DNA from: Prasinococcaceae sp. CCMP 1430
Taxonomy: Eukaryota; Plantae; Prasinodermophyta
NCBI GenBank assembly: GCA_013416795.1
Contig: RQSC01000279.1
Location: 2,400-15,898, forward strand
DNA length: 13,499 nucleotides
Direction: 5' to 3'
The notes beneath the pieces were generated by a model. The model was not told the DNA's origin. It saw only the letters and a list, made by a program, of their open reading frames with translations, and made no database searches. The translations under genes were made by a program, and so were the position numbers. Shown here in pieces: positions 9,056 through 13,499 of the stretch (positions are counted from its first letter, which is position 1; every line of letters starts with the position of its first letter).

Positions 9056-9666
9056 GACGGCGAGTGCGCCCCTCTGCCCGCCGAAGAGGTCAGGGCCACA
9101 CTGAGCAGAGAGCGCTGCGGCCGCTACGGCAGCGAGTGCGAATGCGCGCAGACGGGTGCCCCTAATCACTATCACTTCGAAGGCGGGTACGCCGCGTGCG
9201 AGTGGAGGGACGGCGAGTGCGCCGTCGCGCCGGCCGGGGAGGGCTCCGATAGCACGACCAGCCCCACAGAGGCCACCGCCGAGGCCGACATACACGACTG
9301 CAGCGCCTTCAGCGAGGCCTGCTGCGCCGAGTACAACGACGAGTGCAAGTGGAGGGACGGCGAGTGCGCCTCCCGTTCCTACGAGGAGATGGAAGCCATA
9401 GAGAACAGAGAGCGCTGCGGCTCCATCGCCAGCGAGTGCGCATGCGAGCGGACGGGTGCCCTTAACACCTGGCACTTCAACAGAGGGTACGTAGCGTGCG
9501 AGTGGAGGGACGGCGAGTGCGCCGTCGCGGCGCCCGAGGAGGACTCCGATAGCACGACCACCCCCCCGAACAACACCGCGGAGACCTACAAATACGGCTG
9601 CGGCAAATTCAGCGAGGCATGCTGCGCCGAGTACAACGACGAGTGCGAGTGGAGGGACGGCAAGTG
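9056..9666 (+). repeat. Internal 300-bp (100-aa, two-module) tandem duplication in copy 2
   Basis: Lines at 9121/9421, 9181/9481 and 9301/9601 align with an exact 300-nt period. Outer boundaries are approximate. Confidence 0.85.
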
Positions 9667-10642
9667 CGCCTCCCTTTCCCACGACGAAATGGAGGTCATG
9701 CGGCACAGAGAGATCTGTGCCTCCATGGCTGGCGAGGACGAATGCGCCGAGTACAATGAGTGCGAGTGGAGCGACGACGAGTGCGCCTCCCTGCCCGACG
9801 AGGAGATGCTCGCCATATGGATCAGAGAGCACGAGGAGATGTTCGCCATGTGGATCAGAGGGAGCTGCGGCTACATCGCCAGCGAGAACATTTGCAAAGC
9901 GACCAGAAGAAGTAGCCACGAGTGCGAGTGGAGCGACGGCGAGTGCGTCGCGCAATGCGGCTCCATCACCAGCGAGGTCGCCTGCACCATCTTGCGCGAA
10001 TGCGAGTGGAGCGACGGAGAGTGCGTCGTCAAGGCCGAGGAGAAGAAGAAAAAGAAGAAGAACAAGGCCAAGAAGAACAAGTCCAAGAAGTTGAAGTCCA
10101 AGAAGGAGGACTCCGACAGCATGACAAGCCCCCCCACGCACACCGCCGAGGACATGACGACCACCGGGTGCGTGACGCGGCTCGTAAGCGCCAGCGCGCG
10201 CACGTACGCAAGGGCATGCACTTGCACGCGCGCACGCCGGGGCTGACGCTGGCCACAAACACACATCAATGCACGCGCACACACACCTGCACTCACACAC
10301 ACGCGCGGCAACGCCCACGCGCGCACACGCACATGTGCATGTTTGGCCACACACGTCTCGGACATCACCGGGGTTGCGGCTGCGCCTTACAGATACGGGT
10401 GCGGCGACGTCAGTGAGACCTTGTGCGCAGAGATCGACGGGTGCGAGTGGAGCGACGTCGAGTGCGTCGTCAAGGCCACGAAGAAGAAGGCCAAGAAGAT
10501 CGAGGAGATGGCTGTTGTGCGGACCACAGAGTACTGCGGCTACTTCACCAGAAAGGACGCCTGCACCCAGGTCCACGGGTGCGAGTGGAGCGACAGCGAG
10601 AGTGTCGTCAAAGCCGAGAAGAAGAAGCAGAACAAGAAGACT

Positions 10643-10726
10643 CTCTTCTTCTTCAGGTTCTTCTTCGTCTTCTTCTTCTACAGGTTCTTCTTGTTCAGGT
10701 GCTTGTTGTTCCGGTTCGTCTTCTTC
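10643..10726 (+). other. TTC-rich tract encoding LFFFRFFFVFFFYRFFLFRCLLFRFVFF inside the Lys tail of copy 2; equals the unreversed complement of a Lys-tail sequence
   Basis: In-frame base complement gives gag aag aag aag tcc aag aag aag cag aag aag aag atg tcc aag aag aac aag tcc acg aac aac aag gcc aag cag aag aag (EKKKSKKKQKKKMSKKNKSTNNKAKQKK). Confidence 0.85.
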
Positions 10727-10803
10727 GGGAAGAAGAAGGCTAAAAAGAAGGCCGCGAAGGGCGGCATGTAGGCGGGTGAGCAGGCGCCGAGGCGCGGGCG
10801 CTG

Positions 10804-10821
10804 GCGCTCTCTAGAGAGCGC
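10804..10821. repeat. Second copy of the 18-bp palindrome GCGCTCTCTAGAGAGCGC
   Basis: Read directly. Confidence 0.9.
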
Positions 10822-10938
10822 TCCCCTCGCGCGGCAGGCACAGCAGCGCGTCCGCGCGTGGATCTCGCGTAAACTCTCGCGCTCGGACGCGACTCGAAGC
10901 TCGGATGGACTCGGAGGTTCGAACACACACACACACAC

Positions 10939-10978
<40 letters not shown>

Positions 10979-11029
10979 GCCGAAGACGTCGGCGCGCAGG
11001 AGGTCGAGCAGCGGCCGCGCTGCAGGGAC
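10979..11029 (-). pseudogene. Second, more truncated EDR2-like orphan exon ([17 protein letters not shown])
   Basis: Identical to the first 51 nt of the 7691-7572 fragment, with the same gcag| acceptor. Truncated by a (TG)n tract. Confidence 0.75.
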
Positions 11030-11862
11030 CTGCGGGACAGGCGTGCGTGTGTGTGTTTGTGCGTGTGCGTGTGTGCGTGTGTGTGCCTTTGTGTGTGTGT
11101 GTGTCTGTGTGCGCGTGCGTGTGTGTGTTTGCGCGTGTGTGTGTGTTTGTGCGTGTGCGTGTGCGTGTGTGTGCCTGTATGTGTGTGTGTGTCTGTGTGT
11201 GTGCGTGCCTGTGTGTGTGTGTGTGTGTGCCTGTGTGCGCGCTGGCGTGTGTGTACGTTTGTGCGCCTGCGTGTGTGCATGCTGTGTGTGTGCATGTTCG
11301 TGTTCGTGCGTGTTCGTGTGTGTGTGTTTGCTTGAGCGTTCGCGTGCGCTTGCGGGTGGGTGTGAGGGCGCAGGAGCATACAGACCCTAGATAGATCAAG
11401 TCACCAAAAATTGTGAACCTCAACTTCGCGCCGCGTTCCCCCTCGCGCACGTGTGCGCGTGCGCGCGTGCGCGTGCGTGTGCGCGTGTGCGCGCGCGTGT
11501 GCCCGCATGTGTGCTCGTAACAGTACAAAACGCACGTGCGCGCGGCTGCGGGACGAACGCGCCGCGGGAGGAACCGGGAGGAACACGGACGGCGTCGGTC
11601 GGGTGGAGACGCGCACGCGCGCGGGGCGAGCGTGCGCGCGCGCGCGCCAGCGAGGGACAGGCGAGGCGCCTCGCGGTGGCGGACGCTGCCCAGCACGGTG
11701 GGTGCGTAAGGAGGGGGGAGACTGGGCCTGTGGTGTGTGTACACAGCGTGCGTGGCTGCGCGCGCGTGCCTGCGCGTGAGTGCGTGCTCGAGCCACAGGG
11801 CGCGCGCGTTGCGACGCGCGAAGGAGCGGAGCACGCCGGAGCGGCGCGCGTCCCCAACCGCC

Positions 11863-12939
11863 ATGGCGCCCCCCCGCGGGCGCCTCGCGGCGGCGCTCGC
11901 GGCCGCTGCGGCGTTGGCGCTGGCGGCCTCGCTGCTCCCCGCCGCGCAGGGGGGGGGGCACCCATGCGCCCGGTTTCATGCCGTGCGAAGAGCGGAGTGC
12001 TGGTCCGCGCTCTGCCCCTCCATCGCTGCGCCGGATGACTGCACCAACTCCAACTTCGACGGGATCACTCTTGACAGCCGCCACTGCGAGTGGAGGGACG
12101 GCAGGTGCGCCCCCCTGCCCACCGAGGAAACCGTGGTCGCAGAGAGCAGAGAGCGCTGCGGCGGCTTCGCAAGCGAGTCCGACTGCGAGTCCGACTCCCC
12201 CATGTGGGCGGGGTACGTCGCGTGCGAGTGGAGGGACGGCGAGTGCGCCGTCTCAATGTCCGCCGACGAGCTGAGGGGCATGTGGGACAGAGAGCGCTGC
12301 GGCTGCTTCGACAGCGAGTCCGACTGCTGGCGGCTTGGTGTCTCTGACGACTACCACTTGCAGGCCGGGTACGCCACGTGCGAGTGGAGGGACGGCGAGT
12401 GCGTCGTCAAGGCTGAGAAGAAGAAGAAGAAGAAGAAGAAGAAGGGAACGACAGGGTGCGTGTTACGGCTCGTGAGCGCGAGCGCGCGCGCGTACGCACG
12501 GGCATGCACGCGCACGCGTGCACGCATTCCGGGGCTGACGCTGGCGCGCACACACATTAATGCACGCGCACACACACCTGCACTCGCACACACGCGCGGC
12601 AACGCACACGCGCGCACACACACATGTGCATATTTGGACACACACGTCTCGGACATCACCGGGGTCGCGACTGCGCCTTACAGATACGGGTGCGGCGACG
12701 TCAGCGAGGCCTTGTGCGACGTGTTCGACGGGTGCGAGTGGAGGGACGGCGAGTGCGTCGACAAAGCCCAGCAGAAGAACAACAACAACAAGAAGAAGAA
12801 GGCAAAGAAGATGAAGGCAAAGAAGGTGAAGGCGAAGAAGGAGAAGAAGAAGCAGAAGACGAAGGCCAAGAAGGCCAAGAGGAAGATCACAAAGAAGGCC
12901 AAGAAGGCCAAGAAGAAGACGGCGAAGGGCGGCGTGTAG
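11863..12939 (+). CDS. Cys-module / poly-Lys-tail secreted protein, copy 3 (intact; 4 modules); join(11863..12455,12684..12939), 282 aa
   Basis: gccATGg context; signal-peptide-like MAPPRGRLAAALAAAAALALAASLLPAAQG; four CEWRDG[RE]C modules; two Lys tracts; ends TAKGGV*. Intron 12456-12683 is GT-AG, phase 2, 228 nt, homologous to the copy 2 intron. Confidence 0.85.
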   Translation: MAPPRGRLAAALAAAAALALAASLLPAAQGGGHPCARFHAVRRAECWSALCPSIAAPDDCTNSNFDGITLDSRHCEWRDGRCAPLPTEETVVAESRERCGGFASESDCESDSPMWAGYVACEWRDGECAVSMSADELRGMWDRERCGCFDSESDCWRLGVSDDYHLQAGYATCEWRDGECVVKAEKKKKKKKKKGTTGCVLRLVSASARAYARACTRTRARIPGLTLARTHINARAHTPALAHTRGNAHARTHTCAYLDTHVSDITGVATAPYRYGCGDVSEALCDVFDGCEWRDGECVDKAQQKNNNNKKKKAKKMKAKKVKAKKEKKKQKTKAKKAKRKITKKAKKAKKKTAKGGV

Positions 12940-13499
12940 GTGCTGGCGACAACCCGTTCGTATGTTACCTTTGGAGTTCGACGCCCCCGGCGGGGCGCGC
13001 GCGGCGATAGTGCGTGTGTGATTGTGTGATTGTGTGTGTTTGTGTGTGTGTGTGTGCGCGCGCGCGTGTGTGTGTGTGCGGGTGCGTGTGTGTGTGTGTA
13101 CACGTGCGTCCATGCGCGCGTGTGCCTTCGTGTGCGCCTGCGCGTGCGCACGCGTGCGTGTGTGTGTTGGCGGCCGGGTGGAGGAAGAGGGCATAGACCC
13201 TAGATCAAAGTAGTCCACCGGACCACAAAAAGGTAACCCGTACCTTCGCGCTGCGTTCCCCCTCGCGCGAGCGCGTGTGCGCGCGCGCGTGCGCGTGCGC
13301 GTGCGCGCGCGCGCGTGCCCGCGTGCGCGCTCGTAACAGTACAAATCGCACGCGCGCGCGGCTGCGGGACGAACGCGCCGCGGGAGGAACCGGGAGGAAC
13401 ACGAACAGCGTCGGTCGGGTGGAGACGCGCACGCGCGCGGGGCGTGCGTGCGCGCGCTCCAGCGAGGGACAGGCGAGGTGCCCCGCGTTGGTGGACGCG
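12940..13499 (+). repeat. Start of array unit 4 (spacer/upstream block; the expected CDS would begin beyond the window)
   Basis: 13253-13499 aligns with 8014-8280 and 11433-11690. Confidence 0.8.

Follow-up and report, generated by a model that had tools for sequence, protein, structure and literature searches.

A TTC-rich block in a lysine tail reads as the unreversed complement of a family-type tail and is probably a sequence-handling artefact

In a chromosomal micro-inversion, a block of sequence is replaced in register, its junctions are palindromic against the flanks, and taking the reverse complement restores a native-like, stop-free reading frame. Homopurine-homopyrimidine tracts of the AAG/TTC type are also familiar from H-DNA and mirror repeats, and GAA/TTC tracts form triplexes whose third strand, composed of pyrimidines, is oriented parallel to the purine strand. 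A mirror repeat is, however, a property of a single sequence and involves no copying mechanism. A technical counterpart is the two-base colour-space code of SOLiD data, which gives a sequence and its complement an identical colour string, so that two colour errors complement the stretch that lies between them. When such data are converted to base space, one colour error corrupts every downstream base (PMC4412624). DNA described as "reversed but not complemented" was encountered in the literature searched solely in man-made control or synthetic constructs, such as the "backwards" control DNA SynHPRT1R, in which composition and short repeats are retained and the coding sense is destroyed.

The block described here, of ~84 bases, can be set against each of these. 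With a micro-inversion it shares the replacement in register and the palindromic junctions, but its native sequence is not restored by the reverse complement, which introduces a stop and codons of a mirrored type. With H-DNA and mirror repeats it shares the tract type. With a colour-space error it shares its location, since low-complexity AAG tracts are the weakest place for an assembly from such data; the other two base permutations that the mechanism can produce are not seen in the window. SynHPRT1R-type constructs are sequences of the same class but differ in scale and status, being ~100 kb long and declared, whereas the present block is short and sits silently inside a gene. With a half-done reverse complement it shares the position in register, the unchanged length, the native-looking complement and the intact flanks.

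The window, by which we mean the whole stretch of 13,499 nt that was analyzed, is GC-rich eukaryotic DNA with GT...AG introns and numerous CA/GT microsatellites. A scaffold gap of 267 N at 6553-6819 shows that it belongs to a scaffolded draft assembly. From ~6820 to the end of the window lie three tandem genes of one family, and the gap falls directly upstream of the first of these, the start of which is missing. The family combines a signal peptide with 4-Cys modules that vary in number and close with CEW(R/S)DGEC, followed at the C terminus by a mostly AAG-coded lysine tail, which ends in KGG(M/V) and a stop codon. Gene 2, which carries the block, belongs to this family, as both the modules and the tail end are found in the translations of 8540-10165 and 10394-10768. 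No Pfam domain was detected in 6820-13499, and a search of 1.84 billion protein cluster representatives for relatives of this Cys-module/Lys-tail family returned one Tara Oceans fragment only. The family thus appears to be lineage-restricted.

The three genes, all on the plus strand, provide internal references for one another. The C-terminal Lys tail of gene 1 lies at 7061-7210 and that of gene 3 at 12775-12927, the latter with M, Q, T, N, V, R and I interspersed among the lysines. Gene 2 has an inner Lys tail at 10031-10105, which reads KAEEKKKKKKNKAKKNKSKKLKSKK and has the 15-nt unit AAGAAGAACAAGTCC (Tandem Repeats Finder), 600 nt upstream of the block. It is followed by an intron of 225 nt at 10168-10392 (GTGCGTG...TTACAG), which is paralogous to the gene 3 intron (10160-10488 versus 12448-12779, 88%). 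The last exon of gene 2 (10393-10771) encodes two Cys modules (CEWSDVECV and CEWSDSESV), a short inner tail at 10472-10498, and the C-terminal tail with the block. The tail end and 3' flank of gene 2 are 92% identical to those of gene 1 (7184-7436 versus 10733-10977), with one 7-nt indel and a few substitutions as the differences; the near-identity begins at 10741 in gene 2. This points to a recent duplication or to gene conversion within the array.

The block occupies positions 10643-10726 of the plus strand and reads LFFFRFFFVFFFYRFFLFRCLLFRFVFF. As the sequence-only reading had described, it comprises 28 codons, 16 of which are TTC, amid normal Lys codons in the frame of the last exon: the upstream part of the tail (10610-10642) ends ...KAEKKKQNKKT and is in frame with the block, and the downstream part (10727-10771) reads GKKKAKKKAAKGGM before the TAG stop, that is, GKKKAKKKAAKGGM*. 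When each base of the block is complemented without reversal, the same frame reads EKKKSKKKQKKKMSKKNKSTNNKAKQKK, a family-type Lys tail. All of the non-Lys codons that appear in this complement are also represented in the tails of the window, by GAG (10 occurrences), TCC (2), CAG (2), ATG (2), AAC (7), ACG (3) and GCC (18). The block was also recovered by Tandem Repeats Finder, as an array at 10644-10726 with period 15, 5.7 copies and the unit TCTTCTTCTTCAGGT. All 28 of its codons end in G or C, like the genuine coding sequence of this genome.

The exact bounds of the block are loose. The switch points are compatible with any position in 10641-10646 on the left and in 10724-10729 on the right, corresponding to 79-89 nt, where a shift was tolerated if neither a stop nor an implausible codon arose. 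Neither the preserved frame nor the count of 28 codons, both of which had been put forward as evidence, is therefore informative, since a complemented block never alters length or frame. Tail length can be compared with the paralogues: with the block counted, the tail of gene 2 has 53 codons, versus 54 in gene 1 and 58 in gene 3, which indicates a replacement in place and not an insertion.

To compare the possible readings of the block, a codon model was trained on the seven tail pieces of the window (~170 codons, all from this one window). Tract-like real tails held out of the model scored -1.15 to -2.5 per codon, and the held-out tail T4b, which includes a non-tail end, scored -3.08. Mirrored versions of the real tails scored -2.5 to -3.15 per codon, apart from T5, T4a and T4b. 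On this scale the complement of the block (-1.95 per codon) was level with the real held-out tails, and its reverse complement (-2.77 per codon) was level with the mirrored real tails. The complement exceeded the in-register inversion by 12.5-27 nats over 30 codons across all training sets and pseudocounts tried. The reverse complement reads KKTNRNNKHLNKKNL*KKKTKKNLKKK and bears the signature of a mirrored tail: Asn-Leu three times, Asn-Arg, His and an in-frame TAG. The same combination of Asn-Leu, Asn-Arg, His and stop is seen when the real tails T2 and T6 are reversed. It arises because AAG-TCC becomes AAC-CTG, AAG-GCC becomes AAC-CGG and ATG becomes TAG on mirroring, with ACG mirrored as well.

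Simulations were consistent with these scores. Among 20,000 simulated true inversions of a model tail, none reached the observed margin. Among 20,000 unrelated TTC tracts drawn with uniform GC3 codons, none reached the observed complement score, and 77 of 20,000 did so when codons were drawn at equal Hamming distance from TTC; these nulls assume more independent coincidences than may be warranted, as duplication of one 15-nt unit may have given rise to all three AGG codons. A rough hand estimate for the most generous chance scenario is ~1 in 1,000. The codon scores, their margin and the simulations bear out the earlier proposition that an ordinary inversion fits more poorly than the complement, and the two reverse-complement readings given in its support were both reproduced, one containing a stop and the other being GAA-coded and acidic. 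Judged from the sequence, a complemented family tail accounts for the block far more readily than does an inverted tail or an unrelated TTC tract. It is codon identity that discriminates, and it does so significantly.

Other statistics did not discriminate. The sequence-only reading had relied on exact matches between the complement of the block and the inner tail of gene 2. The longer of these is present and even extends one nucleotide further than claimed (10683-10700 to 10068-10085, 18 nt), and the 12-nt match is likewise real (complement of 10706-10717 to 10061-10072); the complement also matches 12844-12859 over 16 nt and 10093-10105 over 13 nt. The longest reverse-complement matches to the tails are 12 nt. 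As evidence, however, the match length failed against null sequences, in which matches of at least 18 nt were reached in 36-50% of trials. Plain AAG runs supply long matches, so that length alone does not make an exact match significant. Codon order added nothing beyond codon composition, as judged from shared informative codon n-grams (p 0.13-0.30), and the reverse complement has 8 of 23 informative codon triplets in common with real tails, which is near the value of some real tails. Global alignment to the paralogue tails gave scores of 75/60/37 for the "complemented" block versus 69/58/28 for the "inverted" one, an edge that is only small because AAG dominates the alignments. For low-complexity sequence, where match length misleads, a suitable test is hence to place the codon-model scores of complement and reverse complement against those of real and mirrored paralogues.

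Three biological explanations of the block were weighed. One is a real in-place inversion of ~87 bases (10641-10727) followed by drift, with gene 2 as a decaying copy. Inverting 10641-10727 keeps the frame, gives the Lys-rich KKTNRNNKHLNKKNL*KKKTKKNLKKKR and turns an odd ACT codon into the usual ACG. Gene 2 also appears damaged elsewhere, with its ATG at 8448 out of frame and a conserved Cys gone from its last module, and the triplets shared between the reverse complement and the real tails fit an inverted tail. The junctions are palindromic on both sides (AAGAAGA-CTC-TCTTCTT and TCTTCTTC-GG-GAAGAAGA), but a palindrome is an automatic product of any boundary between (AAG)n and (TTC)n and does not discriminate. 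Against the inversion stands its reading, which contains an in-frame stop and five more codons that are absent from the tails (CTG three times, CGG and CAC), and these are precisely the mirrored forms of the Ser, Ala, Thr and Met codons. It also lies 12.5-27 nats below the complement, with 0 of 20,000 simulated inversions being as complement-like as the block, and the presumed native tract, read from the sequence as purine-only, has no inverted repeats that could mediate an inversion. We consider this origin unlikely. A real TTC-based tandem array with the 15-nt unit TCTTCTTCTTCAGGT, which arose on its own and resembles the complement of a tail by chance, seems very unlikely. Such an array could stem from an inverted pure (AAG)n run or from slippage, and may code for a Phe/Arg-rich segment. 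Its period of 15 and 5.7 copies mean that a few founder events could explain the AGG and TTG codons, each present three times; of the seven codon types other than TTC, five differ from it by a single step; every codon ends in G or C, as in real coding sequence; and the codon order carries no significant evidence for a tail. Yet in the independent-draw null most generous to chance, only 77 of 20,000 draws scored as high as the observed complement. AGG and CGG differ from TTC at all three positions and are nevertheless the complements of the tail codons TCC and GCC, and they follow the complemented AAC at a distance of two codons, an arrangement also found in the neighbouring tail. The TTC tract moreover substitutes for tail sequence without a change in length, and no relatives with a Phe-rich tail were found among the 1.84 billion cluster representatives (~15 billion proteins).

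The remaining biological explanation is a true mirror copy, in which the tail would be stored as a parallel complement by some copying or decoding mechanism. The complement pattern itself and the parallel strand of GAA/TTC triplexes speak for it, and the sequence-only reading had raised a mirror-copy event in such a tract. No support was found for this event: the tract is not mirror-symmetric beyond codon shuffles, and an H-DNA-forming mirror repeat was rejected on the same grounds (best self-reverse identity 0.72, versus 0.74 +/- 0.04 for codon shuffles). We know of no polymerase or repair pathway for copying in parallel orientation. Hoogsteen pairing could not specify the C and T positions, which are complemented in the block as well, and sequences of this kind in the literature searched are synthetic constructs only. 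We therefore regard a true mirror copy as exceedingly improbable. Were the complement block truly in the organism's DNA, a previously unknown mechanism by which DNA is written or read in parallel would be implied, a prospect to which we attach next to no credence.

The explanation that we favour is that a half-done reverse-complement step, or a deliberate alteration, produced the block, and on the sequence evidence we put its probability at roughly 0.85. Of the two readings that had been offered before, a software or assembly artefact or altered sequence on the one hand and a mirror-copy event on the other, the former is the one favoured by the codon evidence. Some 79-89 bases of an ordinary AAG-rich tail would have been put through half of a reverse-complement operation, either by complementing the plus strand without reversal or, equivalently, by reversing a minus-strand piece without complementing it. 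The faulty step would be placed somewhere between the sequencing reads and the assembled window. The native tail would then read approximately ...KKQNKKT-EKKKSKKKQKKKMSKKNKSTNNKAKQKK-GKKKAKKK..., with a length and make-up as in the two neighbouring paralogues. What was found agrees with such an artefact, in that complementing the block gives a native-like tail, in register and of unchanged length, and we count the 267-N gap as context for it.

Several steps might have introduced the artefact. An assembler, gap-filler or patching step, including a manual patch, may have half-converted a minus-oriented piece; two colour errors in two-base colour-space decoding may have complemented everything between them; or the change may be a deliberate alteration or a control inserted in the data. 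The step at fault is one that we infer, and these three candidates are not told apart. For the colour-space route, the A<->G/C<->T and A<->C/G<->T transforms of the window were compared with it and gave no non-repetitive matches, a comparison in which only the paralogous parts are informative. Likewise, no second complement-only block was detected among the paralogous spacers, introns and modules of the window, outside simple repeats.

The block is thus very probably not a biological feature, and the tail of gene 2 would be an ordinary Lys-rich one; as biology, the block is most likely of no consequence. For users of the assembly it is a warning. If such blocks were widespread, coding features described as "broken", "orphan" or "novel" would need to be re-read, among them motifs or exons that are missing, unusual peptides and apparent pseudogenes, and the assembly or the data preparation would need a systematic check.

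Two further readings of the block were tried and rejected. As an intron it would lack a GT at its left edge, and its internal GT...AG pairs span ~27-33 nt, versus 225 nt for the intron of the gene; excising these pairs would also leave the Lys tail unrestored. Coding on the minus strand (EEDEPEQQAPEQEEP...) would require 16 GAA codons and one GAG, though the codons of this genome end in G or C.

Independent copies of the block were sought in public sequence collections. Protein searches with the long exon, the tail exon and a neighbouring ORF returned only one 63-aa Tara Oceans fragment (P0001), a scan of JGI metagenome contigs for exact patterns with each flank gave 0 hits, and exact look-ups of three ATG-started ORFs that overlap or adjoin the tract found nothing on record. 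The Tara fragment comes from a 588-nt contig (L001; ENA ERZ28653930, TARA_SAMEA6013060 scaffold_765889), which matches genes 2 and 3 at ~83-93% identity over their last-exon and intron regions. It can be aligned with gene 2 as far as ...CAGAACAA inside the tail, and because the alignment breaks off there, 6 nt short of the block, the contig speaks neither for nor against the block. Positions 461-588 of the contig contain spacer-like pieces matching 13245-13270, 8006-8030 and 8406-8454, which lie upstream of family genes, together with a module. This structure reflects either chimeric assembly of short reads or a genuine deletion variant.

The remainder of the window yielded several observations beside the block. 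An EDR2_C exon (PF07059) is present at 2665-3337 on the minus strand and an NTPase_I-T/YjjX-type exon (PF01931) at 1987-2181 on the plus strand, and for a large minus-strand ORF at 3341-5365 neither a Pfam domain nor a relative in the protein collection was found. The gene 3 intron (12448-12683) contains no stop in the exon frame and the ORF 11737-12939 continues through it, so that naive ORF calling would yield a false 358-aa product.

The apparent damage in gene 2 outside the tail affects its start and its last module. The ATG at 8448 and the signal peptide of gene 2 lie in different frames (8448-8530, compared with 11863-11950 in gene 3), and 12 nt of gene 3 (CCCCCGCGGGCG) are represented there by 2 nt (AG) in gene 2, a net deficit of 10 nt. 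This deficit may be a frameshift, a sequence error or a sign of a pseudogene. In the last module (10592-10609), gene 2 reads CEWSDSESVV versus CEWSDGECVV in the paralogues, and the conserved Cys is lost through a change of TGC to AGT (Ser). The same AGT (Ser) occurs in the Tara contig at positions 418-435, which indicates that the loss of this Cys is present in a wild relative.
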